Translations under genes and position numbers: made by a program
Notes under the pieces: model-generated
The model's input: only the letters and a program-made list of their open reading frames with translations
What the model was told of the DNA's origin: nothing
Database searches by the model: none
Assembly: GCA_002269645.1 (NCBI GenBank)
Contig: NIVC01001722.1
Coordinates: 31,534 to 95,533, forward strand
DNA from: Macrostomum lignano
Taxonomy: Eukaryota
Length of the DNA: 64,000 bases
Reading direction: 5' to 3'
Shown: in pieces, positions 17,401 to 55,500 of the stretch
Layout of the letters: every line of letters begins with the position of its first letter
Numbering within the stretch: the stretch's first letter is position 1

Positions 17401-20400
17401 TGTCTAGGATGAGATTTTGATTTTTAGAATGATATTTTGACATCTAGAATGAGATTTTGATATCTAGTATGAGATTTTGATGTGTAGCCTGAGATTTTGA
17501 CATAAAGTAAGAGATTTTGATATCTAGAATGAGATTTCTAATTCTTATTTTGACAATGAAAAATACCTGGTGCCATTGATGTAGCCGCTCTGCAGCTTCT
17601 TAATAGTGGTGTACAGCGAAGGTGCCTGCTCGCTGGAGTCCGCATTGAAGTACCAGTGGTACACAGGTATGATGAACAGCGGCCGGCCAACAGCCGACCA
17701 GGTGCGCCGCAGGAAGGCCACATCAGTGCGCAGCATGTCTAACAGGAAGTCCAAGTCCAGGCTCAGGTAGAACGAATGATGATCGAGGAACTGCGGAGTG
17801 AAGGCCACGGTGCGCTGGCCAACAATGTACAGCTTGCTGGTGGCCAGGATGCCGACCTCGCTGGACTGGCGGCCGCTGAGGCCCAGCTGGTGGCACTTGC
17901 CCAGGTGCCGATAGAAATGACTCAACACCTTGGCCGGGAACACCCGGATCTTGGTTTCCTTGTACATCTCGGCAAAGTCTTGCACCTGCTTCAGTCCGAA
18001 TTGGGTCTCCAGGGTGCGACGGATTTTGGCGTCTTCGGCAACCACCACAACCTGAAATTGGATCGCTTCATCAATCAGATTTCTACCTTTCTGACGCGGG
18101 GGAGATTTGGTTATCGAGAGAGGTGACAAGAAATTACAGACTCTAGGGAAGAGAGATTACAGATCCTCGGGAAGAGATTACAGATTCTAGGAAAGAGAGA
18201 TGACAGATTCTAGGGAAGAGAGATTACAGATCCTAGGGAAGAGAGATTACAGATCCTAGGGAAGAGAGATTACAGATCTTAGGGAAGAGATTACAGATTC
18301 TAGGGAAGAGAGATTACAGATCCTAGGGAAGAGAGATTACAGATCTTAGGGAAGAGAGATTACAGATCCTAGGGAAGAGAGATTACAGATCCTAGGAAAG
18401 AGAGATTACAGATTCTAGGGAAGAGAGATTACAGATCCTAGGGAAGAGAGATTACAGATTCTAGGGAAGAGAGATTACAGATCCTAGGGAAGAGATTACA
18501 GATACAGAGGGCATACGTCATGGATAGGATGGGGGAACACAGAATAGAGAGCAGCTGAGTAGCAACCCACCTGCACCACCAAGTCGGGCTTAGCCTCGAG
18601 TCCCAGGCGCCTCCCGATGGGGTCAATCTCTTGCGGCCGAAGGAATTTGTCGCGCAACAGCTGGCAGATGACGTACAACGATTGAGTCCACAGGTGCGGC
18701 AGCGCACCAACCGGGTGGCGATCCTGGCTACCCGGAGCGGCCCGCTCTGCTGCAACCAGGTGCCCGGGCACGCTGTAGGACTCGGGCATCTGCGGCAGTC
18801 CGTCAGAGTTCAGCAGAGCCAGCCGGTCCAGCAGGCGGGCGAAGCGGTCCGCCCGCTCGTCAGAGTCGGCGAACTGCGCGTCCAGCAGCTGGTAGCAGAG
18901 GAACAGGGGCCACTCGCACTCGATATTCTCGAACTGGCGCAGCTCCCAGGGCTCGTAATAGAGCCGGTTAGGGTCCTCAACGGCTGTGCGGTAGCCGTCG
19001 CGCAGGAAGCGCCGGTAGCCGTACCTGGGGTGGGATTTCCGGTGGATGATTATAAAGGGATTAGCGAGGTTGTGACTCGGAAAGGAAGGTTAAAAGCAAT
19101 TTTAAAACTAACTAGGAATAGAATTTTATTGAATCAGTTGGGAAATGGTTGGGATAAAGAACAGGATGGATGGAATGGGGAACAGAATGGATTGGATGGG
19201 GAAAAGGATGGGGAATAGGATGGATTGGATGGGGAACAGGATGGATGGGATGAGGAACAGGATGGATGTGATGGGGAACAGGATGGGATGGGGAACAGGA
19301 TGGGATGGGGAACAGGATGGGATGGGGAACAGGATGGATGGGATGAGGAACAGGATGGATGTGATGGGGGAGCAGGATGGGATGGGGAACAGGATGGATG
19401 GGATGGGGGAGCAGGATGGGATGGGGAACAGGATGGATGGGATGGGGGAACAGGATGAATGGGATGGGCAACAGGATGGGGTGGGGAACAGGATGGGGTG
19501 GGGAAAAGGATGGGAACAGGATGGATGGGATGGGGGAGCAGGATGGGATGGGGAACAGGATGGATGGGATGGGGAACAGGATGGATGGGATGGGGGAGCA
19601 GGATGGGATGGGGAACAGGATGGATGGGATGGGGGAACAGGATGAATGGGATGGGGAACAGGATGGGGTGGGGAACAGGATGGATGGGACGGGGAACAGG
19701 ATGGATGGGGTGGGGAGCAGGATGGATGGGATGGGGAACAGGATGGATGGGATGGGGAACAGGATGGATGGGGTGGGGAGCAGGATGGATGGGATGGGGA
19801 ACAGGATGGATGGGGAACAGGATGGATGGGGTGGGGAGCAGGATGGGATGGGGAACAGGATGGATGGGTGAGGAGCAGGATGGGATGGGGAACAGGATGG
19901 ATGGGTGAGGAGCAGGATGGATGGGGAACAGGATGGATGGGATGGGGAACAGGATGGATGGGGAACAGGATGGATGGGGAACAGGATGGATGGGGAACAG
20001 GATGGATGGGGTGGGGAGCAGGATGGGATGGGGAACAGGATGGATGGGTGAGGAGCAGGATGGGATGGGGAACAGGATGGATGGGTGAGGAGCAGGATGG
20101 GATGGGGAACAGGATGGATGGGATGGGGAACAGGATGGATGGGGAACAGGATGGATGGGGAACAGGATGGATGGGGAACAGGATGGATGGGGTGGGGAGC
20201 AGGATGGGATGGGGAACAGGATGGATGGGTGAGGAGCAGGATGGGATGGGGAACAGGATGGATGGGGAACAGGATGGATGGGGTGGGGAGCAGGATGGGA
20301 TGGGGAACAGGATGGATGGGTGAGGAGCAGGATGGGATGGGGAACAGGATGGATGGGGAACAGGATGGATGGGATTGGGAACAGGATGGATGGGGTGGGG

Positions 20401-28119: not shown

Positions 28120-31100
28120 TCAAAGTTGCAGGCGTTCAGGTGGCTGCCTCCGACGCTGCGGATAGCGCCTCGCCGGACTGCTCGGCCGGTCAGCGGCGGC
28201 GGTGGCCGCGTCATCCTGCGGCGCGTCATTGCCGCCGTCGCCTTCGCTTTGCTCGGTGGGCAGCGAATGCGGTTCATCGGAGACAGCGGCCGGCGTCACC
28301 GGGTCGGCCTCTGGCAGCGAGCTCGTCAGCAGCTGGTCCGTGTGCCGCCGATGGAGAGCGCCGCCGACCTCAACGACACAGTTGCGGGATCCAGCGGACA
28401 CGACGCTGCCCTCCGCCCAGCGGGTGCCGCCGCCAGCCCTAGCGTTGGAGCTGAAGTCGCGCAGTAGAACTCGGTCGCCGACTTGAAACTCGCGCGCATG
28501 CGGCTGCTGCTCGACCTGCCGCTCTTGGTGCTGCTGCATGCTGCTCGTCAGCGATGGCATCAGCAGGTCCAGCCGACTGCGCAGTCTGCGGCCGATGAGC
28601 AGCTGGCTGGGAGCTTCGCCGGTGATCGAGTGCGGCGTGTTGCGGTAGGACAGCAGCATCTGCTGCAGTGCCGCCGTCGAGTGCCCGCTCTTGAGCAGAT
28701 GTCGCTTGAGCACCTGAACGAACCTCTCCGCTTGGCCGTTCGTTGCCGGATGGAACGGCGCCGAGAAAACATGCCGAATGCCGTTGCGCCTTGTGAACTC
28801 GCCGAACTCCGCGGAGGTGAACTGCGTGCCGTTGTCGGAGACCAACACCCGGGGAATGCCCAGTCTGGCGAAGACCTCGCGGAGTCGCTCGATGGTGGCA
28901 GCAGACGTAACGCTGTGCACCTGATGAACCTCCGGCCACTTGCTGAAGGCGTCCACGATGACCAGGTACGTGCGACCGTTAACGGGGCCGGCGAAGTCCA
29001 GGTGCAGCCTCGCCCAAGGTTCAGCAGGAAACGGCCACGGTTGCACCGGCGCTTTGGGCGGGTCGGCCTGGTTCAGCATGCAGGTCCGGCACGACTTGAC
29101 GGTCATCGCAAGCTGCTCGTCCAGGCCGGGCCACCAGACGTAGCTGCGGGCTAGCGCTCGCATGCGGTTGATGCCGGGATGCGCCTGGTGCAGCTCGTCC
29201 AGCACGCCTTGTCGCAGAACCGCGGGCACCACGACGCGGGCGCCCCACAGCACGCAGCCTTGTTCAACGCTCAGCTCGTCCTGGCGCCTCGAGAAGTCGA
29301 TGAGATCGGCGCCAGCCATTGGCGCGCCAGTCTGCAGACAGCGAAGCACCCGGCCGAGAATGGCATCCGAGCGAGTGCTGCGCGCGACCGCCTGAGCCGT
29401 TATGGCGGACCCGGTCTCCTCATCCAGTAGCAGGGCGTTGACGGCCGGCTCTTCCTCAAACTGCCTCGGCAATGGCAGCCGGGACAGAGAGTCGCAGTTG
29501 GCGTGCTTGCTGGTGGGCCGGAACTCCAGCGAGTAGTCGTAACCGGCCAAACGGATCGCCCAGCGCTGCATGCGAGCCGCGGCGTGCTCTGGAATCGCCT
29601 TGTTTTCACCGAGAAGTCCTAGGAGCGGCTTGTGGTCGGTCACGATGACGAACTTGCGGCCTTGGAGGAACTGATTGAAGCGCTGGAGGCCGAACATGAT
29701 CGCTAGCGCCTCCTTGTCTAACTGCGAGTAGCCCTTTTGAGCCGTCGTCAGGCTGCGACTTGCGAAGGCAATGGCTCAGTCCTGGCCGTCCACTCGGTGC
29801 GTCAGCACCACGCCGAGACCATAGGGGCTGGCGTCGCACTCTAGCCGCAGCGACAGCTTGGCGTCATAATGCATCAGCACCGGAGACTCGAGCAGAAGAC
29901 GCTTGGACTTCTCGAAGGCTATCTGCTGAGGCTCCCCCCACGTCCAGCGCGTGTTCTTAGTCAGCAGCTGATTCAGGGGAGCGACAACCGTGGACAGATG
30001 AGGCAGAAATTTGCCGTAGTGCGTCAACATGCCCAAATAAGCTCGGAGTTGACTGCAGTCTGCGGGTGGCGGGGCGTCCTGCACCGCCTTCACCTTCTCT
30101 GTCAGCGGCCGCAGTCCGTTGCTGTCGATCCGGTGGCCCAGATACTCGACCGAATCGCGGAACAACTCGCACTTGTCTTTGTTCAGCCGTAGGCCCGCCT
30201 CCCGTAGGCGCTGAAGGACCTTGATAAGATTCTCGCGATGATGCTGCAGCGTCTTGCCCGTCACCAGGATGTCGTCCACAAAGACTTGCACAGACTCTAG
30301 GTCACCGAGCAGCGAGTCTAGCGTGCGCTGGAATACCGCACTGGCGCAGTTGATGCCGAACGGCATGCGGTTCAGCTGGTACAGGCCTCGCTGCGTGTTG
30401 ATGGTCAAGAAGGGCTTGCTGTCCTCAGACAATGGCAGCTGCAGGAAGGCGTTTGACATGTCCAGCTTGGACCATTTGCAGCCGCCACCCAGCTTTGCAA
30501 ATAAGTCCTCAATGCGCGGCAGTGGGTACAGCTCCGGCCTGGACTCTGCGTTGTAGGTGAGCTTGTAGTCGCCGCAGATCCTCACCGAACCGTCCTTCTT
30601 GACAACAGGCACAATTGGCGCAGCCCAGTCGGAATGTTTGACTGGCGTGATGATGCCGTCAGTCTCCATCCGTCGAAGTTCCTGATCGACGCGCTCCCGG
30701 AGTGCATAGGGGACCGGTCTGGCCTTGAAAAAGCGCGGCTTCGCCTCAGTCGGCATGTGCAGTTTCACCTCGCCGTGCCGATAGGTGCCAAGGCCGCCTT
30801 GGAAGACCTCGGGGAACTGCGCGAGCAGATCAGCTGCTTGTCCGGTCACTGAGTTGACCTGACCAAGGATCGTCGGCCAGGCCAATCTCAGCTGCGTCAG
30901 CCAGTCGCGACCCAGTAGTGCGACATCGCCTTGCTCGACCACAAGCAGCGTCAACCGCCGATCTTGGCCATTATGCTGAACTGCGACCTCTGCCTGTCCG
31001 ATGGGTCGAAAGCTCTCGCCCGTGAAGGTGCGCAGCACCGTGGATGTCGGCGACAGACGGAGACCCGGCAGGACATCATCTTGGAGACTCTTCGGGATGA

Positions 31101-32055
31101 CGGTGAGGGCGGAGCCGGTATCCACCTCGAAGCGACATGGCTTGCCTTGGAGCAGCAGCTCGACCGCCAGACCCTTGCTGGATCCGCTCTGCCTAATGCT
31201 GAAGAGGGGCTCCTGCTGCTCAGACGGCTCTGGGTCCAGCTTGTGCAGCTTTGAAGACCTGCACACCTTGCGGATGTGCCCGACTTTGCCGCAGTTATGG
31301 CACTTGGCCTCACGAAGCTTGCACTGCTGCCGACTGTGGGCGCCGCCGCAGCTTGCACACGCGCCTGAGGCAGCAGCTGACCGCATAGCGTTGGCTTGAG
31401 CTCCGGGCGGCTGCCGGGGAGCCTGCTTGTTGAATTTGTTGAGCTCTTTGGGCGCAGCGGGCTTCTTGTGGAGACGCAGGTGGGCAACTGCTTCAGCACG
31501 GTGCGCCATCTCCGACGACGATTTCTCCGCTGCCTCCAATGCGTCGACTCTGGCCACGAGCGTCTTGAAGTCGGGCTGTTCGATCTCCAGCAGCTTTGCA
31601 CGGTGCACGTCACTGCGGAGACCGAAGACAAACTGGTCGCGCAGTCTCTCGTCCAGAGTGCTGATGCAGTGGGATCCGTCTGACCCGTCCAGAGTGAACT
31701 CAAATTTGCAATGCTCCGAGGCAGCCTTTAGGCCAGCAATAAAGTCCGCGAGACTCTCGCCGGGCTTCTGCACGCGCTGTTGAAAGCGGAATCTGGCGGA
31801 TAACATTGACGTCTTGGGAGAGTAATGTGCCCTCAAGACAGCAGCTAAGTCTGAGTATGACTTGGAGGTCACCGTTTCCGGCAGGCACAGATTCCGAAGA
31901 ACCTTGTAAGCGTCTTCTCCGATGGCGGTCACCAGCGTGGCGACCTTCGCCTCGTCTCGGACTTCTTTACAGATGAAGTATTGTTCGAGCCTCTCTAGGT
32001 ATACCTCAATGTCAGAGTTTGCAGAGAGTTCTGGAATTCTACCAGTTGTAGCCAT
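28120..32055 (-). pseudogene. gag-pol polyprotein (~1311 codons) with one in-frame TGA at 29778-29776
   Basis: Two gag zinc knuckles (CASCGGAHSRQQC, CHNCGKVGHIRKVC), protease VDTGS, RT FVDD, RNase H CDAS...EALA...TDHKPL, integrase HHCC and DFAG/SDNG/ERF. ORFs 29776-32055 and 28120-29697 share a frame; the junction reads DGQD*AIAFASRSL. Confidence 0.93.
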
Positions 32056-36506: not shown

Positions 36507-39500
36507 ATGCTCGGCATTACGCAGACAACGAATAAAACTACTCTTCTGGTGAGTCGCGAGAGGTTTTATCGAACCATATTACTAACATGGACGTTGTTAG
36601 ACAGCTAATAATACTTTTAACTAATTCTAACAACAGAGGTACTTGGCGCTGCCACAGCCGGAGGACAAGGTCCAGTGCATGTACATCTGGATTGACGGTA
36701 CCGGAGAGAATTTGAGAGCAAAAACGCGCACAGTTGATTTTGTACCGAAACAGGCGACAGGTGAGCAAAATCAAAAATGGAGTTCTCGTCTTTGTTTTTA
36801 GTTCAAAATTCTGGCCGAACTTTAATGAAATTACGGGCATGACCCCGAGCTCCATTAAACTGCGCCATTTCCACTTCAATTTTATTGCGACCACTTTTCC
36901 CAGGCGGGTCAGCTGACCCCGTTTGACACCCCTGGCTGCTGGCTCCGCCATTGAGTAAAGTTCTGCTCTCCCTTCCATCTTGCCGCATTCAATTCAATTC
37001 AAACAGTTCAATTCTTTTTTCTGAAAATTTTCAAGGGAATCTAGATTCTCGAACCTCTGAATTTCTCAGGGGTCAGGTGACCTTTTTTGACCCCCAAAAT
37101 CTGCCGTTGCCTTGATAATTATCTTTATTCGTAGATCATGGGGTAAATTTTTCGTCTCCTATGTGGTTGCTTGTCATTTTTTGTATCTTATAGAGTGCAA
37201 GGTACTGACTGATTATAATCTTGATTAAGTGAACTTTGCGATAATGAAAACAATTTTCCTTCACAAACATTCTCTGTGAAAGTTTTAGCCTGTACTCCTT
37301 TGCATTTCGGCTGAATTAAAACTGAATTATCACTGCACGGGTCGCTTGCGTGCTCCACAGCTGACTGGCTATGTACATTGTCAATGTACGGGGCCTCGTG
37401 TCAGTTATACAAGGGAAAGAAAGAGGGTTGACTGGGACTGACTTCGGGCTGAAGTGGCAGGCCCCCACCCCCTCCCTAGCGGACTTGTAAGTAGCGATGA
37501 GAAAACCCTCCTGAGGGGCGGGGTGAAATAGCTCGGGTTTCCTAACTGTCACGCGTTGTCCGCGTGACCAACAAAATTTACCGGACTAAGCTGGTTCCAC
37601 CCCGTGCGACGTGTGCGAGCCCCGTCAAGGCGAGGCGACCTGCCTTTTCAAAATCTTGATTCCTATGGCATGGCATGGGTCTATTTATTTCTAAGATACA
37701 CACAGCAATATGAAAAAATTCCACCCAAGATCATCAGTGTCCACTTTTTCTAAGATCTCGGTCCAACGTCCAATTGTGACGAAATTCACACCACGACTGC
37801 CGGTGCTTGTCTCGGCTGAATGCAAATTGCGTCACCACTCTCACCAGGCCCTAGCTTAGGCTGGTGAGGAGGGGTACGAGATTTACGAATCCCATCTCGT
37901 ATGAGAAGTTATGGTTAGAGTTGGACTTAAGTTGCAAGTTGTTGACAACTGCATGGTTTCGTGGTATGATTAAAGACCTCATTCTCAGCATGCAGCATAG
38001 GGGTGGTGACAGAACTACTTTAAGCAGTCCCTACCTTCAAAACTCCTTGGCCGTAGTTTGGATTAGAACAGTGGGACCTTGCTATCGGACCACAACCCAA
38101 GCTACCAATTCTCCATCTAAGGCGGGTGCCCCTGAGAGGGTGATGGCTGATCCCCATGTCTGATCTGAGCTAGCAAAAGTGCCTGGCAAGACTTTTAGAC
38201 AATGTTCGTACTATGCTACTGATAGTAGGGAGAGTTGAGAAGCTAGAGGAATAGTAATCACAAATATGACGCCAATGAACTAACTTAACTGTTTTGACAA
38301 TTGTACTCCTCTTTTGTGAGTCTGGCGTCATTGGTTCCCATTTTTTTTGAGGCTGAATCCTACTTTCTCTCCCCTGACACCTATTTTAATACCTTTGACA
38401 CCTATAGTTTGTCTCCCCTGACACTCACTTTGTCGCTTAACGTCACTGCTAACTACCTTGGTCGTACGTTGTGCAGCTTCAGCCCCCCATAAAGAATAAA
38501 AAAGTTGCATAACTCCCCCCGCAGAGCTGCCAATCTGGAACTTCGATGGCTCCAGCACCGGGCAGGCGGAGGGCCACAACTCCGATGTCATGATCCACCC
38601 GGTGGCCCTGTTCAAGGACCCGTTTCGCGGCAACAACAATAAGCTGGTGCTGTGCGAAACCTACCGCCACGATGGCGCGGTGCATCCTAGTAACAAGCGC
38701 AACTCCTGCAACCAGGTGATGCAGAAAGCCAAAGGTTTCGAGCCCTGGTTCGGCATTGAGCAGGAGTACACTCTGCTGGACACGGACCTGCACCCCTTCG
38801 GCTGGCCTAAGAACGGCTTCCCCGGGCCGCAGGGTCCCTACTACACCGGGGTGGGCGCCAACAATGTCCACGGTCGCGACATTGTGGAGTCGCACTACCG
38901 GGCTTGTCTGTACTCGGAGATCAAAATCTCCGGCGAGAACGCTGAGGTCATGCCGGCGCAGTGGGAGTTCCAGGTGAGGTTGCCGCCACTCTTTCACAAC
39001 GGTTTAGCTGGAAGAAACAGTAGTCATGTGACTGCTCTCAACCAATAGCGACCTACATGTGTGTGTGTGCAAGAGAGAACGCCGCGCCAGGCACTATCGA
39101 GACTGCAATGACTCATCGAAGTGCCAATGGACGCAATTACTAATAATTTTAATGAAATTTCACTCTGTGCCAAAAACAGTTGTCTTCCGATTATAAAAGC
39201 CAAACATACTGCTTTCAGTAGGTAGAATGACGCTGTACAATGCAAGCGTTCTCGCTTCTATTTTCAGGTTGGCCCGTGCGAAGGCATCAGCATGGGCGAT
39301 CACCTGTGGGTGGCCAGGTTCCTGTTGCACCGGGTGGCCGAAGACTTCGGCGTTGTGGTCTCCTTCGACCCCAAGCCGATGCCGGGCGACTGGAATGGCG
39401 CCGGCGCCCATGCCAACTACAGCACCAAGGAGATGCGCGCGCCAGGCGGCATGAAGGCCATGGTGGAGGCCATCGAGAGGCTGGGCAAGCGGCACGCCGC

Positions 39501-40118
39501 CCACATCAGGGCCTACGATCCCAACGGCGGAAACGACAACCGAAGGCGGCTCACTGGCCGGCACGAGACATCAAGCATCGATAATTTTAGCTATGGTGAG
39601 CTCGCTTAGGGCCAGGTGGGGCACTAACAGGTGCCCTAAAGCTTGCCCCTGAGATTAAAGCGATCGAATGTTAATTAGTTAGTTCACTGGATGTGAACAG
39701 CCGATCCAGCAGCCAGGGACGGTGCATTAGATCAGTGCGGCCGAGTGCAGAATCGACCCGTGGAACCGTCGAGTGGGGGACTCTAGCGATAGAGAGTCGG
39801 ACGACGCGTTCTAGCGCTAAGCTGCTCTGCCCTAAGCAGCCAAATCATCAATGTGTCATTCCAAATCCAGGGGAATGGGCAGCAGTGCCTCAGCGCCAGG
39901 GTGCCCCGCAGCATTGCCGATTATATTTTTAATAACTCTACCTAAATTCGCGCCCCTCCGCAGGCGTGGCCCACCGAGGCTCGTCCATCCGCATCCCGCG
40001 TCAGTGCAGCGACGACGGCTGCGGCTACATCGAGGACCGGCGGCCTTCGTCCAACTGCGACCCGTACTCGGTCACCGAGATGCTGGTCCGCACCACCTGT
40101 TTGAATGAGACCGACTAA
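36507..40118 (+). CDS. GLUL: Glutamine synthetase type II, 5 exons, 365 aa
   Basis: Exons 36507-36548, 36637-36760, 38525-38973, 39268-39595, 39964-40118; all GT-AG and in phase (1098 nt). Motifs [72 protein letters not shown]. Confidence 0.96.
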
Positions 40119-40654
40119 TTCTCCAAAAGTGATCTTACCGTAATCAACTGTTTAGTATAGAAGCGCTGACTGCCCTGCCCAGGCCTGCTTGTTATTATTA
40201 AAAGTACATCTGCGTCAGGTATGCACCGAGCTTTGGGTCATATCATACGTGTTCTTATTATCTATGAGTACTAATCTGTCCTATCAGAATCCCAATGCCA
40301 GTTATAATCAATTCCTCAACATTAAAGTTTTAACTTCACCCCCGATGACTAACATTTCGCTTATCATTAACCTGAGGTAGTTGCTTAGAGTTATAACAAA
40401 ATATTTTACAAATTTACCCTCTGTCAAGACTTTTTCGTATCTTTGCGCTGTGTCTGTCTCTCATGTAATTTGCATAAACTTTTCTTTATTGTTTAACTTT
40501 TAACCCAAACAGTCATGTAGTCTTTAAAATGATTATATTTCAATATTTCCGTACAAGATATTTTTGCTTCCAATTAAATAAATAATTACCCTCCACACTA
40601 AGTACAAACTCGTTCAGTGCCGTGTCGTTTCGGACTACAAAATCCTTCAGACTC

Positions 40655-40848
40655 TGACCCAGGCCACTCAGAACAGATTCAGACCCTGACACAGATCTCT
40701 GAGACCCTGACACTCTGCCCTGAGACCCTGTTGTAGATCTCTGAGACCCTGACACAGATCTCTGAGACCCTGACACAGATCTCTGAGTTCCTGACACAGA
40801 TCTCTGAGACCCTCACACAGATCTCTGAGACCCTGACACAGACCCCTG
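40655..40848. repeat. 21-bp minisatellite (CCCTGACACAGATCTCTGAGA)
   Basis: About 9 tandem units. Confidence 0.88.
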
Positions 40849-41639
40849 TGTGGTCCTGAACCCACATTCCATTCATACCAAATCACTTTATGCTTCATTT
40901 CGAAGCTGTCGATACAATACAGCTACCAGTTCACAGAAATTCAAGCGATAGCTACTACTGCACACTTTGACAGTAGTAAATTATGGAAATTTTGCAACAG
41001 TATGCGTAGTAAAAGAACAACCGGATTGAATTCGGAATTCCCACCGCACCGGACACAAATCAGTTTCGACCAATTGGGCTGCCAGCTACACCTGCTGACA
41101 TTCAAGTCGTGACGACAGGTGTAGATTGATTAATAGCTTGCTTTTAGAAGCAGCAAGCCGGAGATCTGTGGTGCAGAACTGGGTCGTTTATCATCTCGGA
41201 AGGTTCCGGTTAGTCAAAACCATGAACTACCAGCTGCATACCTGATACCTGATTAGTAAACTTCTTGCGGACTCGTCTTCATGCATCCACTTATAGTTGT
41301 TGACTGGAATTGATGGCCATGGCAATTAATAATAAGATGTGGCACATACAAACTGGATTGATGATGCACAGTTTTTTTCTCCTGTGGATTAAATGCTGGC
41401 ACGGAGTTCTTATCGCCGCCGAGTACAACAGCAGTAGCTTTAAGTCGGTTGTCTTAGAAATGACCTGGAGGCCAGTAAGTAATTCGGATATTTGTTCTTT
41501 TGCTGTTGCATTTTGTATTCTTTCTAGAGAATACTGGTTATACTGGAGCATATATTAAAGGCACTAGCGACACGACAAATATCCAGCCTCCGGCATGTCG
41601 CTCTTCTGTCTTGTTTTCTGAATCTCTGTCTAAGTGTCT

Positions 41640-41965
41640 TAGTTTCTCAGTCTCTCAGTCTGTTAGTGTCCTAATTAGCGCCCTTCTTAGTGTCTTATTG
41701 TCTTAGTGCCTAGTGTCTTAGTGTCTTAGTGTCTTAGTGCCTATTGTCTCAGTATTCTAGTGTCTTAGTATCTGTCCTAATGTCTTAGTGTCTTAGCGTC
41801 ATAGTGCCTTAGTGCCTTAGTGTTTTTGTTTCTTAGTGTCTTAGTGTCTTAGTATTCTAGTGTCTCAGTATCTGTCTTAGTGTCTTAGTGCCTTAATTCC
41901 TTAGTGTCTAATAAGTGCCTTGTCTTAGCGTCTTGTGTCCTAGTGCCTTAGTGTCTTAGTGTCTT
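41640..41965. repeat. Degenerate (TTAGTGTC)n array, left part; resumes ~44170-44345
   Basis: The same 8-bp motif lies on both sides of the foldback element. Confidence 0.85.
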
Positions 41966-41995
41966 GGAAAATGAATCCGAAAATCAACATAATGT

Positions 41996-42042
41996 AAGTA
42001 AAGACGCGTTTCGCACTCCTAGGTGCATCTTCAGGTTTATTT
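41996..42042 (-). ncRNA. Minimal type I hammerhead ribozyme (PLE pLTR)
   Basis: CUGAAGA-U-GCAC[CUAGGA]GUGC-GAAA-CGCG-UC (core 42034-42003), with palindromic CGCG in place of stem III and a GUC cleavage triplet. Confidence 0.75.
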
Positions 42043-42217
42043 TTTCAACAACGAAATTAAACAGGTTTTGCGAATAAATATGTGGAGTTGGTTGTAGGTA
42101 AACAAGAAAAATTAGAAAAATTATTGAACAAATCGATATTGGAGAACACATGAGTTAGTCCGTACGGCAGAGTGAAGTCCGGGGGCGGAAAGAATGTACA
42201 CCCAGTACTCTCTCTCA

Positions 42218-42545
42218 TCAAAAGACACGTAGTAGGTGACCCGCGCCACTATGTTGGAGTTGTGTGTTTAGGCTGGGTGACTGGGCTTTTATGTGCATGG
42301 CCTCAAGAATTCTAAGTTTGAAGTCCGACTGACATTGGTCGATGATTTTAAAGTGCTCGTTTGGGTTGCAGTTAGAGCAGCTACTACAGTGCAGTAAGTG
42401 ATCTTGTATAGCAGACGGTTTGAGCCAGTGCTCCCTGGTTCTGGTGTGTAGGTGTCTTTTAGTTTTCCCCACGTAGGAGACGCTCTGGTCAACAGAGCAG
42501 TTGAATTGATAGACGACACCAGCACGCAGAGCACGGGGACACACG
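42218..42545 (-). pseudogene. C-terminal GIY-YIG endonuclease domain of a Penelope-like element (5'-truncated)
   Basis: GVVYQFNC...YVGKTKRHLHTRTREH...FKIID...LRILEAMHIKAQSPSLN; homologous to 52299-52718. Confidence 0.88.
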
Positions 42546-42885
42546 GCCGGCGGCTGGGCCGGCGGCTGGGCCGGCGGCTGGGCCGGCAGCAGGGCCGGCA
42601 GCAGGGCCGGCAGTAGGGCCGGCAGCAGGACCGGCAGCAGGACCGGCAGCAGGACCGGCAGCAGGACCGGCAGCAGGGCCGGCAGCAGGACCGGCAGCAG
42701 GACCGGCGGCAGGGCCGGCAGCAGGGCCGGCAGCAGGGCCGGCGGCAGGGCGAGTGGCATGGCGAGCGGCAGTGCGAGCGGCAGGGCGAGCGGCAGGGCG
42801 AGTGGCAGGTCGAGCGGCAGGGCGAGCAGCAAGGCGAGTGGCAGGGCGAGCGGCAGGGCCAGTGGCAGTGCGAGCAGCTGTCTCG
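42545..42885. repeat. GC-rich 12-bp minisatellite (GGCCGGCAGCAG, drifting to GGCGAGCGGCAG)
   Basis: Tandem units with a gradient of variants, internal to the foldback element. Confidence 0.9.
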
Positions 42886-42967
42886 CATGGAATTAAAACT
42901 TTGGACTGTCTATCAGACGCCGTCCGCTTAGGGCTAAAACTGGTGCCGCCGCGACCCGCCTCTTTGC

Positions 42968-43862
42968 TCAGTTTTTTGATTCGGCAGCCACCGAGCTGTG
43001 TTGCAGCTTTGAGTGGCTCCCTTCGCAGATGCGGCAGATGTGGGCGAAATTGCAGGTGTGTCTGTGACAGCCTTTGTTGCTATTGAACAGGCCGCAGATG
43101 ACCTGTCCAGCGGATGACAGCTGGCCCCTGCTACGGTGACCCTGGACTCCTTGACCGACCGCGACTGGGCCAGCAGCTCGCAGGTTTTTGGGCGCCGTCA
43201 TATGCTTGATGATGAGGTTCAGATCGGGGCTGTCCCAGTCGCGCTGTCGCGAGTGCTGCTGCAGCCTCATGTCCTGGTCGTACTGGAGCACCACCTTCCA
43301 GTCGTAGCCAGCGTCGATCAGCTCGCCGATGTGGATGTTAAAGTTGAGGTAGGCGTTCAGACTTTTGCAGTCGGGCTGTCCATCCGTACCGGGCGCCACC
43401 AGCTGGCCGGTCTCCAGCAGTCGCTGCATGATCCGCGCGTTGGCAGCCACCCACTGGCCGAAGTTGACTCCGGACAGGCTCGGCGTTGCGCCTTTCAGAG
43501 TCAGGCGACCACGATCCTGTGTCAGCCATCCTCCCGACTGCTGCCTCTCGTCCAGAAATTCCGGGATGAGCAGCGCTGATGGGGGCCGCTGGGCTCCGGC
43601 CGAATCAAACCTCGGTTGTCGGCTCTGGTCCCCGAACAGGCTGGCGTAGATGTCCGGCCCTCCTCTGGCCAGCGGGGCGATGCGGCGCCACTGCGGATCG
43701 ACTGCACTTCATCCCGCAACTGGGCCTCAGCCTTCTGCAGTTTAAGCAGCTCGATCCTCTTCTGAGTCTGCCGAATCTGCGCTTCTGTGGCCTCCTCCGC
43801 TGGCGCAGCCCGGCGCACGTCATCCTCGTCCTGGTCGTCGTCACCGTCGTCATCGCTGGAGA
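42968..43862 (-). pseudogene. 5'-truncated gag/ORF1 of a tyrosine-recombinase (DIRS/Ngaro-like) retrotransposon, one frameshift
   Basis: Extending ORF 42968-43450 upstream gives LLIPEFL...GQWVAANARIMQRLLETGQL...YDWKVVLQYDQDMR...W and CGLFNSNKGCHRHTCNFAHICRICEGSH, which I recognise as YR-retroelement ORF1. The upstream coiled-coil part (ORF 43522-43818) is one base out of frame, near the G4 run at ~43675. Confidence 0.65.
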
Positions 43863-44063
43863 CGGGTCACCTACTACGTGTCTTTTGATGAGAGAGAGTA
43901 CTGGGTGTACATTCTTTCCGCCCCCGGACTTCACTCTGCCGTACGGACTAACTCATGTGTTCTCCAATATCGATTTGTTCAATAATTTTTCTAATTTTTC
44001 TTGTTTACCCACAACCAACTCCACATATTTATTCGCAAAACCTGTTTAATTTCGTTGTTGAAA

Positions 44064-44110
44064 AAATAAACCTGAAGATGCACCTAGGAGTGCGAAACGC
44101 GTCGTTACTT
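44064..44110 (+). ncRNA. Minimal type I hammerhead ribozyme (inverted pLTR copy)
   Basis: Core 44072-44103, identical to the left copy; stem I closes with C-G, A-U, A-U. Confidence 0.78.
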
Positions 44111-44789
44111 ACATTATGTTGATTTTCGGATTCATTTTCCTTTTACTAGCCAAGCGAGCTACACTACCCGATTTCTACTTAGTGTCTTGCGTCCTAGTGA
44201 CTTAGAGCCTTAGTATCTTACTGCCTTTAGTAGTGTTTTAGTGTCTTAGTGCCTTAGGGTCCTAGTGTCTAGTATCTGTCTTAGTGTCCTAGTGTCTTAG
44301 TTCCTTAGTGTCTTAGTGCCTTAGAGCCTTAGTGTCTTAGTTATATCTTAGGGCCTGTCTGTCTGTGTTAAGTGTCCGTATTAGTGTCTTTTAGACATCT
44401 GTCTGTCGACAGTCCGTCACAATGATTCAGCAAAAATCATTTGAGAGTAGAAGGCATTACCGTTAAACATAAGCGTTTAAAACAAATTAAAAGAAAAAAC
44501 CTGTGTTATTAGTATGGCCAGAGCAGGCAAATGAGGTCTAGCAGTGCTTTATATACGGTTAAATAAAGTAATTGCTTAATCCGCAATTTCACTGCACATT
44601 GATGACGTTTGCCAGAATGGCTAGCTCTAAGCAGCTTTGGATCAGAAGGCTAACTTTTTTCGAAAACTAAAACCATTCAATAGAGTGCAATAAATAATAA
44701 CAAAACCTTTAAATTTGTACATCAACAGTACAGCGAAGCATAATGTATAATAATGTATTGATTCCTCACTTTCGCCCGGCCAAATCCTA

Positions 44790-45085: not shown

Positions 45086-45499
45086 TGGGGCCCCAAAAGT
45101 AAAAATCTTTTCAGCAGCTAAGCAGATTCAAGTTTCTTATAGTGCAATGCATAATTAATAAAAAACAGTCAATACAACCTGCGCTTCACAGCGATTCCCT
45201 CCCTTTACTGAATACTGGGCGCTGGGGTCCAGCTATGAAGCAAATACAAAGTTGTTAGGGTCTAAAAGAAACGAGAAAAAGGATTTTTATATGCGTCTCT
45301 ACATAGCACGTAAAAAAACAAGCATTTAGCTGGGACAACATGACAAAACCATTACTCTTAATTTGTTTTAAATGAAATGAAATTAAACAAGCTATAGGCT
45401 ACAGGATGCTTAGATGACAATCGTAGATGGGGTGCATGTCATGAGAGTAACAAGAAGTCACTTTTAGATAATTTGAGAAAATAAGCAAAATTGGTTTTA

Positions 45500-46435
45500 G
45501 ATGGCATGAGAAAACAATAAATAAGTTTTTGATGACGTCAGAATATCAAGAAATGAGTTTTGGATGAGGTCAGAAAAACACAAAAAATGAGTTTTGGATG
45601 CCGTCAGAATGACAAGAAATGAGTTTTAGATGACGTCAGAATAACAATAAATGAGTTTTAGATGAGGTCAGAATGACAAGAAATGAGTTTTGGATGAGAT
45701 CAGAATGACAAGAAATGAGTTTTGGATGACGTCAGAATGACAAGAAATGAGTTTTGGATGAGGTCAGAATAACAAGAAATGAGTTTTAGATGAGGTCAGA
45801 ATGACAAGAAATGAGTTTTGGATGAGGTCAGAATGACAAGAAAAGAGTTTTGGATGACGTCAGAATAACAAGAAATGAGTTTTAGATGACGTCAGAATGA
45901 CAAGAAATGAGTTTTGGATGACGTCAGAATGACAAGAAATAAGTTTTAGATGAGGTCAGAATGACAAGAAATGAGTTTTGGATGAGGTCAGAATAACAAG
46001 AAATGAGTTTTAGATGAGGTCAGAATGACAAGAAATGAGTTTTGGATGAGGTCAGAATAACAAGAAATGAGTTTTAGATGAGGTCGGAATGACAAGAAAT
46101 GAGTTTTAGATGAGATCAGAAGGACAAGAAATGAGTTTTGGATGACGTCAGAATGACAAGAAATGAGTTTTGGATGACGTCAGAATGACAAGAAATGAGT
46201 TTTGGATGACGTCAGAATAACAAGAAATGAGTTTTGGATGACGTCAGAATGACAAGAAATGAGTTTTGGATGACGTCAGAATGACAAGAAATGAGTTTTG
46301 GATGACGTCAGAATGACAAGAAATGAGTTTTGGATGACGTCAGAAAGACAAGAAATGAGTTTTGGATGACGTCAGAATGACAAGAAATGAGTTTTGGATG
46401 ATGTGAGCAAAGAAGAAATGAGTTTTAAAACCATG
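45500..46435. repeat. 32-bp minisatellite (GAATGACAAGAAATGAGTTTTGGATGACGTCA)
   Basis: About 28 units ending in TGACGTCA or TGAGGTCA. Confidence 0.93.
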
Positions 46436-46576: not shown

Positions 46577-49500
46577 TCACGGCCTGTACAGTCGGCAGCG
46601 GTGCGTCCGCACTCGGGTCTCGCACTGTTGGCAGTCCACCCTGATCGGGTTGGACTTCATCTGGCAGCGGCACCACTCCCGCTGGATGATGTACATTGGC
46701 GCAAAGTTGAACTCGCCGCAGCACAACCTCTCGCAGGAGTTCGGCTGCCCGGCCGCGTCGATAGTGGCGTTGCACTGGCGGTCCTGGACGCCGTAGTAGC
46801 CGTCGTGTCTGCTTGCCGTGCAGTAATCCGGCTGAGGTCGCCAGTGCACCAGGTCCTTCTTGCCGACCCGACCTCGACTGCGGCGTCCAGCGGCTCGCCA
46901 GTTGATCGGCACCAGCTTGCCAAACCTGTCCGCTCGGCTGGACCGTCTTGGCGCTGCTTGGCTCGGTGGTTTCCTCCGCCGCTCAGTCGGGGTGAACAGC
47001 TGCACCGGTTTGCTGTCTTGCAGCAGCTGGCGCAGGTTCGCCTCCAGCTTGCCAGAGAGGCGGCGCATGCCTTTGATGCAGATCTGCTTGGTGCACGAGC
47101 CCGACACGCCCAGGCAGTGGCAGATCCTCACCTGGCTGTGGCGGGCCGCCTGGCAACGGCGTGGGTTGGGGAGTTCGCGCTGGGGATGAAGGAGTTTGGA
47201 TCGTGGGTTGTGGGATTCATGCTGGGTGATGAAGGAGTCTGGGGATCGTGGGTTGGGGATCCGTGCTGGGTGATGAAGGAGTCTGGGGATCGTGGGTTGG
47301 GGATCCGTGCTGGGTGATGGAGTCTGGGAACGGATTGAGTTGGGGAGTTTGCACTGGTTGATGAAGGAGTCGGAGAACGGATTGAGTTGGAAGTTTGCTC
47401 TGGTTGATGAAGGAGTCTGGGAACGGGTTGGGTTGGGGAGTTCGCGCTGGGGGATGAAGGAGTCTGGATCGTGGGTTGTGGGATTCATGCTGGGTGATGA
47501 AGGAGTCTGGGGATCGTGGGTTGGGGATTCGTGCTGGGTGATGAAGGAGTCTGGGGATCGTGGGTTTGGGGGTTCGTGTTGGGTGAAGGAGTCTGGGAAC
47601 GGATTGAGTTGGGGTTGGGGAGTTCGTGCTGGTTGATGAAGGAGGCTGAAAACGGGTTGGGTTGGGGAGTTCGCGCTGGGGGATGAAGGAGTCTGGGTAC
47701 GAGTTGGTTTGGGGAGTTTCACATGGTTGGTGAAGGAGCCTGGGGATCGTGAGTTTTTTTGGGGAGTTTAACTGGTTGATGAAGGATTCTGGGAACGGGT
47801 TGTTTTGGAGAGTTCGCGCTGGGCGATGAAGGAGTCTACATATTTATTTTTATTGAAAATGAAACTAAAAATTCTATTCGGAAGCAAGTGTTACGCCATT
47901 CTACTACAGGGGTTAACAGCTCCAACAGGCCAAGTCTCGTGCTAAGCGCTCACAATCTGGCCAGCCCTCCTGTTGTGCACGTTGACCAGCATTGGCAGCG
48001 GCAGCGGCCCCCCAACCGCTCTCAGGTTGGCCCTCGTGTCGGCGAAGAACTGGCGAACTCTTCGACTGGCCAACCGCAGATTGTCGTCGCAGGACGGCAG
48101 AGAAATCCCGCCGTATTTCTGCCCGAGCGTCTCCGGGCTCAGCGTCCGCAGCTGCTGCTGGCCGCGGTCGACGCTGCGGCCGGCGCGTCGGCGCGAACTC
48201 CAAGCCGTGGCGTCGTCGGCGCCACCTGGCGAGGACAGCACGGTAGGGCGGGAGCTGACGGACCGGCAAGGGCAGTTCAGGCCCGGCTGGCCGCGCCGAC
48301 ACGCCAGGGCCAGCTCCTCCACGGCCTTGGCGGCTGCCATCGCCCAGACAAAGCCGGCCTGCGGGTAGCCTTGGGAGGCAGGGGGTGCTGGTTCGGGTAT
48401 TTGGGGATTGCGTTTGCGATAGGACAGATAGCTAGGATTATTCGCACTAGATGCTGCTAGGATGCCCGTAGCATCTAATGAGAAGCCATCGATAAGCTGA
48501 CAAGAGGCTAATTAGAAGCTAAGAGAAGCTGACAAGAAGCTAAGAGAAGCTGACTAGAAGCTAAGAGAAGCTGACTAGAAGCTAAGAGAAGCTGACTAGA
48601 AGCTAAGAGAAGCTGAGAGAAGCTGACTAGAAGCTGATTAAAAGCTAAGAGAAGCTAAGAAAAGCTGATTAGAAGCTAATTAAAAGCTCAGAGAAGCTAA
48701 GAGAAGCTAAGAGAAGCTAAGAGAAGCTAAGAGAAGCTAAGAGAAGCTAAGAGAAGCTAAGAGAAGCTAAGAGAAGCTAAGAGAAGCTAAGGGAAGCTAA
48801 GAGAAGCTAAGAGAAGCTAAGAGAAGCTAAGAGAAGCTAAGAGAAGCTAAGAGAAGCTAAGAGAAGCTAAGGGAAGCTAAGAGAAGCTAAGAGAAGCTAA
48901 GAGAAGCTAAGAGAAGCTAAGAGAAGCTAAGAGAAGCTAAGAGAAGCTAAGAGAAGCTAAGAGAAGCTAAGAGAAGCTAAGAGAAGCTAAGAGAAGCTAA
49001 GAGAAGCTGAGAGAAGCTAAGAGAAGCTAAGAGAAGCTAAGAGAAGCTAAGAGAAGCTAAGAGAAGCTAAGAGAAGCTAAGAGAAGCTAAGAGAAGCTAA
49101 GAGAAGTTAAGAGAAGCTGACAAGAAGCTAAGAGAAGCTGACTAGAAGCTAAGAGAAGCTGACTAGAAGCTAAGAGAAGCTGACTAGAAGCTAAGAGAAG
49201 CTGAGAGAAGCTGACTAGAAGCTGATTAAAAGCTAAGAGAAGCTAAGAAAAGCTGATTAGAAGCTAATTAAAAGCTCAGAGAAGCTAAGATAAGCTAAGA
49301 GAAGCTAAGAAAAGCTGATTAGAAGCTAATTAAAAGCTCAGAGAAGCTAAGATAAGCTAAGAGAAGTTAAGAGAAGCTGAGAGAAGCTAAGAGAAGCTAA
49401 GAGAAGCTAAGAGAAGCTAAGAGAAGCTAAGAGAAGCTAAGAGAAGCTAAGAGAAGCTAAGAGAAGCTAAGAGAAGTTAAGAGAAGCTAAGAGAAGTTAA

Positions 49501-52500: not shown

Positions 52501-55500
52501 TCAATCGGTTTGCTGTTACAGCATGAGTTACATGTGAGAAGGTGCTCCTGTACAGCAGATCTTTTGGTCCAGTGCTCCTTGACCCTAGTGTACAAGTGTC
52601 GCTTAGTTTTTCTGATGTACGAAATACTCTGGTCGCCAGAGCAATGAAATTTATAAACGACACCTGCATTGAGAGGCCGAGGGACACGGGACTTCAAGTT
52701 GCAGACATACTGGGACACCTTCTCTGTGCGGAACGTGATCCTAAGCTGAACGTTGAGGCTTTTTTGAACAGTTTTTCAACTTTCTTCTTAAACTCAATAG
52801 AGCAGAGGCCAAAAAACGGCAACACAATCGTAGGGCCGTTAGTTTCTCTAGCATTATACTCCTGAGTGCTCTGTTGATTAGTCAGCTTGTTATTTAAAAA
52901 CTGGTTCACAATGCGAGACACATAGTTCCTGGGGTAACCATTCCCAATGAGATGGCCAGTAAGCTGTTCCACCTCATCATGAAACAGTTTCCAGGAGCTA
53001 CAGATCAGAAAAGCTCTATGCAGAAAGCAGCGAATCAGGCCATTCTTCCATTGCCATTGCCATTTCCATTGCCACAACCCCAGGTAGAACCACAACCTCA
53101 GGTAGAACCACAACCCCAGGTAGAACCACAACCCCAGGTAGAACCACAACCCCAGGTAGAACCACAACCTCAGGTAGAACCACAACCCCAGGTAGAACCA
53201 CAACCCCAGGTAGAACCACAACCCCAGGTAGAACCACAACCCCAGGTAGAACCACAACCCCAGGTAGAACCACAACCCCAGGTAGAACCACAACCCCAGG
53301 TAGAACCGCAACCCCAGGTAGAACCACAACCCCAGGTAGAACCACAACCCCAGGTAGAATCGCAACCCCAGGTAGAACCACAACCCCAGGTAGAACCACA
53401 ACCCCAGGTAGAATCGCAACCCCAGGTAGAACCACAACCCCAGGTAGAACCGCAACCCACAACCCCAGGTAGAACCGCAACCCACAACCCCAGGTAGAAC
53501 CACAACCCCAGGTAGAACCACAACTCCAGGTAGAACCACAACCCCAGGTATAGAACCACAACCCCAGGTAGAACCACAACCCCAGGTAGAACCACAACCC
53601 CAGGTAGAACCACAACCCCAGGTAGAACCGCAACCCACAACCCTCAGTCAATGACCCGAGCTCACCAGTGTTTAAGAAATCTTCTTCAAAGGTGCAGTTC
53701 CACCTGTGGTGCTGGAACATGACCTGGCAGGCCCGGTAGCCATTCACCAGGCCGCTGTGCGCCAGTCGGTCAGCCACGCTGCCGGCGCGGCAGAGGTTGC
53801 GCAGACGCGGCGTCAGGTCAGCGGCGGTGCACAGCTCGTCGGGCACATGCTTGAGCAGCTGGTAGAATGAGGTCGAGTCCATGGGCGGCTGCTGCCTTCT
53901 GAACTGCGACCGTCTGTGGAGCAAAGAGAGAACCAGCTGTTACCCCTCTGACTGTTTCCCAGACAGCTGCTGTCCCCCTGTGACTGTTTCCCAGACAGCT
54001 GCTGTCCCCCCTGTGACTGTTTCCCAGACAGCTGCTGTCCCCCCTGTGACTGTTTCCCAGACAGCTGCTGTCCCCTCTGTGACTGTTTCCCAGACAGCTG
54101 CTGTCCCCTCTGTGACTGTTTCCAGACAGCTGCTGTCCCCTCTGTGACTGTTTCCCAGACAGCTGCTGTCCCCTCCGTGACTGTTTCCAGACAGCTGCTG
54201 TCCCCTCTGTGACTGTTTCCCAGACAGCTGCTGTCCCCTCCGTGACTGTTTCCCAGACAGCTGCTCAGCTGCTGTCCCCTCCATGACTGTTTCCCAGACA
54301 GCTGCTGTCCCCTCTGTGACTGTTTCCAGACAGCTGCTGTCCCCTCTGTGACTGTTTCCAGACAGCTGCTGTCCCCTCTGTGACTGTTTCCAGACAGCTG
54401 CTGTCCCCTCTGTGACTGTTTCCAGACAGCTGCTGTCCCCTCTGTGACTGTTTTCTTGCAATTAGCTCGTATTGCATTGATCAGTCATTAAGCCTCTTTA
54501 AAGTGTTCAGTATACAAAATTTACCGAACAGAATTGAATAGCATATTTTTGTTAGATTTCTCTTGCGTAGAGGTGTGGATGAATATTTTCGAACGCCTGT
54601 TGCCATCAAGTGAAATAAATTTGCACGTGGTTTCCCGCGCTCTCAACAGGATTCGCACGCTGTGGCCCCAATTTAATTATTGATTATTACGCAATTCAAT
54701 AAACCTTGCCGCTTTCTGAATCCCCTTTCCGAGTTGAAGCATTTTTCGCACCTTGTAAACGTGCAGTTTCAAAGGCGAGGTTGTCAAACAGAGCTTGTTC
54801 GGTTGGTGCTAATAGCAAGCTAATCAGACTGACTCGAATGGCACCCGTGACTGCAACTTGCAGTGCGTGTAACATTTGTTTATGCATACTCATGCTGCCT
54901 GCAAGCCTCACCTGTTGAGTCTCGCGAAAATTTTTGAAGCCTGCCAGTCTATAGTAGGTTTCTTAACTGTTGGTACTTAAGATTTTTCACATTCTCAGAT
55001 ATCTGCAGAACTCAAGCTGATGAACTGGTTCGATCGTTGCATAATGTACATCTTGCCTGCACACTCTGTGCTTTTCACTGCCAATTTTATGCAAAACCTG
55101 ACTGATCTTTCTGAACTCACTCGCTCTTCATCTCTGAACGTCTCCCCTTCATCTCTCTGACACCGTCACACCTCCATTTCTGATGCCTCACTTCTCTGAC
55201 ACCTCCGTTTCTGATGCCTCACTTCTCTGACACCTCCGTTTCTGATCCCTCACTTCTCTGACACCTCCGTTTCTGATGCCTCACTTCTCTGACACCTCCG
55301 TTTCTGATGCCTCACTTCTCTGACACCTCCGTTTCTGATGCCTCCTCTTTCTGATCCCTCACTTCTCTGACACCTCTTTCTGATCCCTCACTTCTCTGAC
55401 GCCTCCCCTTTCTGATTCCTCACTTCTCTGACACCTCCTTTCTGATCCCTCACTTCTCTGACACCTCCTTTCTGATCCCTCACTTCTCTGACACCTCCTT

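Follow-up and report, generated by a model that had tools for sequence, protein, structure and literature searches.

An apparent Penelope-like insertion framing an Ngaro-like gag fragment with inverted ends in Macrostomum lignano

How does part of one retroelement come to lie between the inverted ends of another? The question is raised by a block of 2212 bp in Macrostomum lignano, at 41966-44177 of a 64,000-nucleotide stretch of contig NIVC01001722.1 (the whole stretch is called the window here, and plain coordinates are positions in it), where two copies of what appears to be the 3′ end of a Penelope-like element (PLE) enclose a fragment of an Ngaro-like gag gene. A preliminary description of this DNA had taken the block for a possibly mobile, ribozyme-capped unit made by template switching. 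We tentatively favour, at somewhat less than an even chance, a single PLE retrotransposition with a template jump onto Ngaro-like RNA. The product is a dead-on-arrival chimera, with no reverse transcriptase (RT), no gag start and no tandem copy of the PLE terminal repeat (pLTR), and it is probably not mobile.

Extent and history of the insertion

The insertion was delimited by comparing three M. lignano wnt loci: the window contig (L009, which matches the window at 100% identity over 10 kb), L010 (NIVC01000162.1) and L011 (NIVC01000127.1). L011 has a clean empty site (...GCCTTAGTGTCTTAGTGTCTTGCGTCC...), which defines the insert, including a 37-bp tail. The target was an 8-bp satellite, (CTTAGTGT)n, and both the unit and the left copy of the target-site duplication (TSD) lie within it. 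The outer features are as follows.

41955-41965, no strand: left copy of the 11-bp TSD, CTTAGTGTCTT, single in the L011 empty site and present on both flanks in the window
41966-42243, minus strand: left arm, the putative 3′ end of a longer 5′-truncated PLE copy (inverted-repeat comparison)
43863-44140, plus strand: right arm, an inverted, shorter 5′-truncated putative PLE 3′ end, identical to the left arm in L010
44141-44177, plus strand: PLE 'tail' of 37 bp, at the right end only, part of the inserted block by the L011 empty site
44178-44188, no strand: right copy of the 11-bp TSD, CTTAGTGTCTT (comparison with the L011 empty site)

The arms form an inverted repeat of 278 nt (41966-42243 against 43863-44140) with 2 mismatches (42002/44104 and 42096/44010), and their similarity ends abruptly on both sides, with no extension beyond 278 nt. 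The block has the same terminus at either end, facing outward; the left arm, which holds the last endonuclease codons, the 3′ region and a hammerhead motif, terminates at the proximal terminus without a tail. Read 5′ to 3′ on the minus strand, the block consists of the antisense right arm, a gag-like open reading frame (ORF; 43862 to 42968), an 82-bp spacer, a 12-bp tandem array (42885 to 42545), a GIY-YIG domain ending at 42218 and the remainder of the left arm. The near-perfect termini, each with an outward hammerhead core, had been recognized in the preliminary description and were confirmed by repeat comparison and a descriptor scan; the contents it had listed between them (gag fragment, 12-bp array and GIY-YIG tail) were also confirmed.

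L010 carries the whole unit at the identical site with identical junctions. Comparison of the block between the window and L010 turns up three substitutions, two indels of a single G in G-runs and one extra array unit. The L010 arms are identical over 278 of 278 positions and its gag ORF is uninterrupted; the two arm mismatches of the window and its gag frameshift (a 1-bp deletion in a G-run near 43673, found in the window copy only) are private changes or homopolymer errors. The G-run lengths differ between the carrier contigs at 42534, where the reading frame across the array/endonuclease junction is unequal between the two copies, and at ~43673, and these differences may be homopolymer assembly errors instead of mutations.

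Could the whole chimera be an assembler's chimeric or foldback join? The single-G differences may be errors of long reads in homopolymers, as the platform used was presumably a long-read one. PLE inverted and tandem structures are also known to trouble assemblies (PMC8557442). Against this stand two contigs with diverged flanks and identical junctions, and a third locus with a precise empty site and TSD. An artefact is effectively refuted, and we give it hardly any credence. Because the empty site, the TSD and the identical junctions in a second contig agree, there was no misassembly and the block entered whole, after the split from the L011 lineage. The chimera, whose reality the preliminary description had made conditional on such a check, is genuine; nor was an independent insertion of gag into an older PLE seen: the unit is one block with an 11-bp TSD.

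The window and L010 units share their flanks and site, in paralogous or allelic loci, and are therefore copies by descent. The flanks of the window diverge by 0.3-0.7% from L010 and by 1.1-1.7% from L011, and the unit lies within a 3.8-kb low-divergence tract common to the window and L010. We considered whether lower divergence in the unit than in the flanks pointed to later spread, and rejected this because the tract takes in the flanks. Across 40085-44760 the comparison with L010 is a mosaic, with 4 substitutions in 40850-44660 and 15 in 40085-40620, which suggests recombination or gene conversion between the carrier copies. Satellites of 21 bp and 32 bp flank the region (40660-40870 and 45436-46427 in the window); their copy number is very unequal among the three loci, the 21-bp array of L011 being ~1.4 kb long.

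The putative PLE ends and their hammerhead motifs

PLEs typically have an inverted 5′-truncated copy, a tail of 30-40 bp at one end and complex repeats, and they target microsatellites (PMC8557442). The block shows this anatomy: inverted 5′-truncated copies with the same terminus on both arms, a tail of 37 bp on the right and none on the left, and a short TSD (11 bp) in a simple-repeat target. Three further features bear on the identity of the arms.

42218-42544, minus strand: putative GIY-YIG endonuclease domain with its stop codon at 42220-42218 (Pfam PF01541 and motifs)
42003-42034, minus strand (sense 42034-42003): left-arm minimal hammerhead motif, C3 to C17 (descriptor scan; features of PMC4209133)
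44072-44103, plus strand: right-arm minimal hammerhead motif (descriptor scan)

The endonuclease is cut off ~10 codons upstream of its GIY motif. It matches positions 2-72 of the 78 of PF01541 (E = 0.0028; 18.3 bits, below the cut-off of 22.6 bits) and a PHROG endonuclease (E = 0.017), and the motifs VVY...YVG..R..R..EH...E...N can be read by eye. Comparison with Protein Data Bank sequences and NCBIfam gave no meaningful match, an exact-protein look-up of four ORFs of the unit found no record, and a single-sequence AlphaFold2 model of the endonuclease was too poor for use (predicted local distance difference test, pLDDT, 44). Together, the GIY-YIG tail, the minimal hammerhead motif, an ATG in its stem II, the one-sided tail and the simple-repeat target speak for a PLE event, and the identification of the arms as PLE 3′ ends is supported at the level of sequence.

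The stem II ATG has a counterpart in PAc, the Anolis PLE, whose ORF starts at hammerhead stem II (PMC11167929); in the window it stands at 44078 (plus strand), at the start of the stem, and is followed by a stop after 14 codons. The frame of a second ATG, at 44116 (plus strand), spans the arm end and the entire 37-bp tail (MLIFGFIFLLLAKRATLPDF...). In Adineta vaga the first ~22 ORF residues are encoded by the pLTR plus tail, and by that analogy ATG 44116 may be the true PLE ORF start.

Cervera and de la Pena (PMC4209133) characterize minimal PLE hammerheads by a loop 3 that is short and palindromic, by pairing of G10.1 with C11.1 and by a base that separates A9 from 10.1. The motif in each arm, CUGAAGA-U-GCAC-CUAGGA-GUGC-GAAA-CGCG-UC, fits this description, with CUGANGA, a bulge after A9, G10.1-C11.1, GAAA, a palindromic CGCG loop 3 and C17; helix I has 2-3 bp only. 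Cleavage by the right-arm motif is predicted after C44103. Position 1.1 is U in the left arm and G (44104), private to the window copy, in the right arm; U is ancestral, because both L010 arms have it. The descriptor, composed after the motif had been seen, found only the two arm sites in the 64 kb, against an expectation of 0.15 for that length. A scan of metagenomes with the hammerhead-core pattern gave 4 hits, 3 of them read by eye as small-GTPase-like coding sequence; all 4 were taken as chance, as none resembled the PLE arm beyond the pattern itself.

Are these motifs working ribozymes? The preliminary description had proposed self-cleavage of transcripts from either strand, and this found no support. 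Rfam returned no hammerhead match at gathering score or E ≤ 10, its sole hit being a chance small nucleolar RNA match (E = 3.9). In thermodynamic folding, the hammerhead is not the minimum-energy fold of the monomer motif, and the ancestral motif favours an alternative hairpin. Published minimal PLE hammerheads were inactive as monomers in vitro (PMC4209133), and any transcript of the unit would contain one sense motif and its perfect complement. The motifs are probably relics of PLE ends, not working caps.

The same evidence bears on whether the unit is a propagating non-autonomous family, moved by PLE enzymes acting through inverted pLTRs, processed by hammerheads on both strands and folding into a double-stranded RNA (dsRNA) panhandle. 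A. vaga pLTRs are inferred to suffice in cis to move unrelated sequence (PMC3846280), and the unit is young, with an unbroken gag ORF in L010. Against such a family, the flanks of the only two copies are shared, no second copy lies within the window and no further arm copy was found in the ~140 kb of M. lignano sequence examined. The frame across the array and endonuclease differs between the two copies, and PLEs are said to need more-than-unit copies for retrotransposition (PMC4209133). Both mobility and working caps are disfavoured because there is no direct pLTR, monomers are inactive in vitro and the motif pairs with its own complement. We regard a propagating family, which the preliminary description had also put forward, as very improbable. 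A still-active form of it, mobilized by PLEs and spreading an Ngaro-type gag and frameshift-site module with bidirectional transcripts and dsRNA, is about equally improbable; if true, it would be a route for capsid-like genes between retroelement classes.

The cargo and the surrounding sequence

Foreign sequence begins at the junction 42544/42545 and comprises four features.

42968-43862, minus strand: 5′-truncated Ngaro-like gag, identified from relatives and its native stop; ORF uninterrupted in L010
42968-42977, minus strand: slippery heptamer A_AAA_AAC (42977 to 42971) followed by the gag stop TGA (42970 to 42968), common to the window, L001, L004, L003 and L002
42886-42967, minus strand: spacer from the gag stop to the array, with the -1 frame open (frame reading)
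42545-42885, minus strand: 12-bp tandem array of ~28 units, 79% GC (Tandem Repeats Finder)

From which element does the gag come? The fragment contains a coiled coil, a conserved core and a CCCH-like finger without the N-terminal SAP domain, whereas the family has the SAP domain, coiled coil, conserved core, CCCH-like finger and a KN-stop end. There are three close relatives (43-56% identity), and a profile search with the gag gave 1098 relatives, mostly of 300-400 amino acids (aa). The most informative is L003, a metagenome contig whose gag is 32% identical to that of the window (E = 2e-34). Positions 1-4327 of L003 carry a 117-bp terminal overlap and reduce to a circularly permuted unit of 4210 bp; either tandem copies or a circular form of the element lay behind its assembly. 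The gene order of L003 is gag (356 aa), RT/RNase H in the -1 frame (RVT_1, 57.8 bits; pol ~640 aa) and a tyrosine recombinase (Phage_integrase, 28.6 bits against a cut-off of 27.1; ~294 aa), which fill 3.8 of its 4.2 kb. L003 has no further Pfam domain and no room for a methyltransferase, and its layout is therefore Ngaro-like. From M. lignano come L002, in which RT in the -1 frame comes after gag and a recombinase gene lies upstream, and P0013, which joins SAP, gag and recombinase. These neighbours bear out the DIRS/Ngaro-like source given in the preliminary description: relatives adjoin RT/RNase H and tyrosine recombinase, and derivation of the cargo gag from an Ngaro-like tyrosine-recombinase retroelement is supported by homology. 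We had also considered the gag as a PLE ORF1 and rejected this, as its relatives sit in units of gag, RT and tyrosine recombinase.

In five of five loci (window, L001, L004, L003 and L002) the gag ends with A_AAA_AAC and then TGA, and the -1 frame is open beyond. The invariant C-terminal Lys-Asn of the gag follows from this arrangement, in which the heptamer directly precedes the stop. The -1 frame runs for 643 aa through RT in L003 and into RT in L002; in L001 and L004 it crosses arrays of 21 bp and 18 bp at the same place as the window array, and in the window it extends for 162 aa across the spacer and the whole 12-bp array. The pattern suggests that gag-pol is made by -1 frameshifting in this family. 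The heptamer and stop occupy 1213-1222 in L001, 1240-1249 in L004, 1803-1812 in L003 and ~11110-11119 in L002.

The 12-bp array, which Tandem Repeats Finder divides into two sub-arrays (42545-42875/85), reads in the -1 frame as the low-complexity (AAGP)n start of an Ngaro-like pol, because no stop interrupts that frame from the slippery site to the far side of the array, and the two closest relatives have arrays there. On the same grounds (the pol -1 frame and the relatives' arrays) we rejected the alternatives that it is PLE-derived, by analogy with the repeats inserted in A. vaga between RT and endonuclease, or that it was made by the insertion.

A metagenome scan based on the gag alignment yielded no confirmed locus. 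Members of the gag family also occur in deposits labelled as bacterial metagenome-assembled genomes or metagenomes, namely P0151 (MEE4248673.1, 'Kangiellaceae bacterium') and JGI sample 3300040801 (L001, L003 and L004); the bacterial-labelled deposits are probably eukaryotic contamination of bins.

The unit is intergenic, between the convergent 3′ ends of a glutamine synthetase gene (36577-40118, plus strand) and a wnt gene (46577-47722 and 53016-53924, minus strand), whose exon at 46577-47722 matches BOX15_Mlig029070g1 of M. lignano at 100% identity. Elsewhere in the window, an intronless Rab/Ras-type GTPase ORF lies at 1244-1960 (plus strand). A Ty3/gypsy-type element at 28120-32055 (minus strand) has two long open ORFs, the first encoding a zinc knuckle, a protease, RT and the beginning of RNase H, the second the end of RNase H and an integrase, and it looks young. 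At 19112-20643, ORFs of 480-505 aa are open in three minus-strand and several plus-strand frames with no Pfam match; the stretch is probably one long tract of repeats or low-complexity sequence.

Origin of the chimera and its place among known systems

How, then, were the two retroelements joined? The event that we favour, retrotransposition with a template jump, would have taken place once, by a PLE RT-endonuclease, in an ancestor common to two of the three copies that M. lignano has of the wnt/glutamine-synthetase interval. Both target strands would have been cut, each 3′-OH priming reverse transcription on PLE RNA, as the Anolis PLE does in vitro. On the right, synthesis would have started at the distal site, giving the tail, and halted after 315 nt. 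On the left, it would have started at the proximal site and copied 580 nt of PLE RNA to the start of the endonuclease domain; the cDNA would then have jumped to an Ngaro-like RNA, landing in the repetitive pol start, and continued back through the frameshift site and gag for ~1.3 kb before stopping. Joining of the two cDNA ends would complete the insert. Gag and PLE endonuclease alike read in the sense direction on the minus strand, which is what one cDNA on two RNA templates requires.

Template switching, as proposed in the preliminary description, is plausible: the shared orientation stands in its favour, and the claim does not stand as the only route, as read-through from a nested PLE gives the same product. 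An older 5′-truncated PLE would have lain in the pol-start array of an Ngaro-like element, and a promoter transcript would have run via gag and array into the PLE 3′ end (5′ transduction), to be copied in trans by a PLE RT with 5′ truncation inside gag. Microsatellites and simple repeats are preferred targets of PLEs (PMC8557442), and this copy itself sits in an 8-bp satellite; the PLE/cargo junction falls exactly within a tandem array; gag, array and endonuclease are collinear and share one sense; and transcripts with repeat-rich flanks have been proposed for A. vaga PLE inserts, in which pLTRs suffice in cis (PMC3846280). However, a solo 5′-truncated PLE ends at the RT start site and should lack the downstream RNA for internal initiation (PMC11167929), so that a partial tandem PLE would be needed at the source. 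We consider read-through a serious rival, though less likely than the template jump.

A two-step history would begin with a head-to-head PLE insertion (copies of 580 bp and 315 bp), whose junction later broke and was repaired with extrachromosomal Ngaro-like cDNA. Inverted-repeat junctions are fragile, and no separate TSD accompanies the cargo. DIRS-order elements produce abundant linear single-stranded cDNA, according to one report (PMC7192593). On the other side, the three loci show an empty site or the complete unit only, and 3 substitutions in 2212 bp between the carriers, with identical arms in L010, leave little time for a second event; the cargo orientation, too, agrees with the cDNA model. 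The two-step history is decidedly improbable.

Several points weigh against the template-jump reading, beyond the existence of the two-step alternative. PLE identity comes from a sub-threshold Pfam hit plus structural hallmarks. In the PLE CCHH motif, GIY and YIG are separated by a stretch with two Cys (Arkhipova, 2006, cited in PMC8557442); here, VVY-QFNCSVDQSVS-YVG has one of the two, with Asp at the expected place of the second and His residues present downstream. Chlamys is among the PLE clades without CCHH, and the missing Cys lowers the PLE claim without excluding it. A word-indexed protein search found no homologue of the endonuclease, and 41966-44177 holds no RT sequence, as the copy is truncated at the endonuclease start. 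The shared orientation of gag and endonuclease could be a one-in-two coincidence, and if a PLE lay nested in an Ngaro-like array, read-through from it would leave the same product.

The locus has the merit that every junction is defined (TSD, one-sided tail, both truncation points and foreign join) and that the PLE insertion is dated by the empty site. Its anatomy agrees with what in vitro work has described, namely cleavage and priming on both strands and two internal sites at which the RT starts. If the template-jump reading is right, PLE machinery is able to fuse its own sequence to the gag and pol start of another retroelement, and such fusions would be one way in which modules could be shuffled between classes. 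For annotation, hammerhead-flanked foldbacks near M. lignano genes are likely to be ordinary PLE insertion products.

The closest parallels are in A. vaga, where host genes and other unrelated sequence are framed by pLTRs, inverted ones included, with a 31-bp tail and TSDs of 8-10 bp, and where read-through transcripts and template jumps were proposed for the foreign inserts (Arkhipova, Yushenova and Rodriguez, 2013, PMC3846280). The window unit shares the framing of unrelated sequence by PLE repeats, the one-sided tail and the TSD, and many A. vaga cases are likewise single-copy. It differs in that A. vaga cargo consists of host genes (nonribosomal peptide synthetase, leucine-rich repeat) or non-coding DNA, usually with a pair of direct pLTRs and a single inverted one, whereas here the cargo is from another retroelement class, there are only two inverted truncated ends, and a stretch of PLE endonuclease is kept.

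Canonical endonuclease-bearing (EN+) PLE insertions (Craig et al., 2021, PMC8557442; Frangieh et al., 2024, PMC11167929) also have an inverted copy abutting the main copy, a tail at one end, a microsatellite bias and a hammerhead motif near the 3′ end with a stem II ATG. The purified Anolis enzyme cuts and extends both strands, and two internal RT start sites bound its tail (PMC11167929). Unlike these, the window unit lacks RT, a full ORF and a direct pLTR, and its 580-bp main copy is fused to foreign sequence.

In LINE-1, twin priming, 5′ transduction and template-switch retrocopies provide two-end priming, 5′ truncation and cDNA made from two RNAs or from read-through. The difference is that PLEs combine GIY-YIG with a telomerase-like RT and that internal initiation gives a tail, with no poly(A). 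Among Ngaro-type elements (DIRS order, PMC3266345), which like VIPER are separated from DIRS1 and PAT by the absence of a methyltransferase, the cargo gag family finds its place in the gag, RT/RNase H and tyrosine recombinase units of L003 and L002, with no room for a methyltransferase; the window, unlike them, has a 5′-truncated gag and the first ~140 codons of pol, with no RT, recombinase or terminal repeats, and was not inserted by a recombinase. Animal non-LTR retrozymes, as presented in a preprint (bioRxiv 10.64898/2026.07.22.740005), are likewise non-autonomous hammerhead-bearing derivatives of PLE pLTRs. They are short direct tandem repeats with hammerheads on one strand, whereas here the motifs are inverted, on opposite strands and 2 kb apart, enclose coding cargo and have no tandem copy. 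The preliminary description knew of no element with this architecture; the inverted 5′-truncated copy, tail, TSD, repeat target and capture of foreign sequence have all been published (PMC8557442, PMC3846280, PMC11167929), and the unit is a documented example of known PLE behaviour rather than a new class of element.

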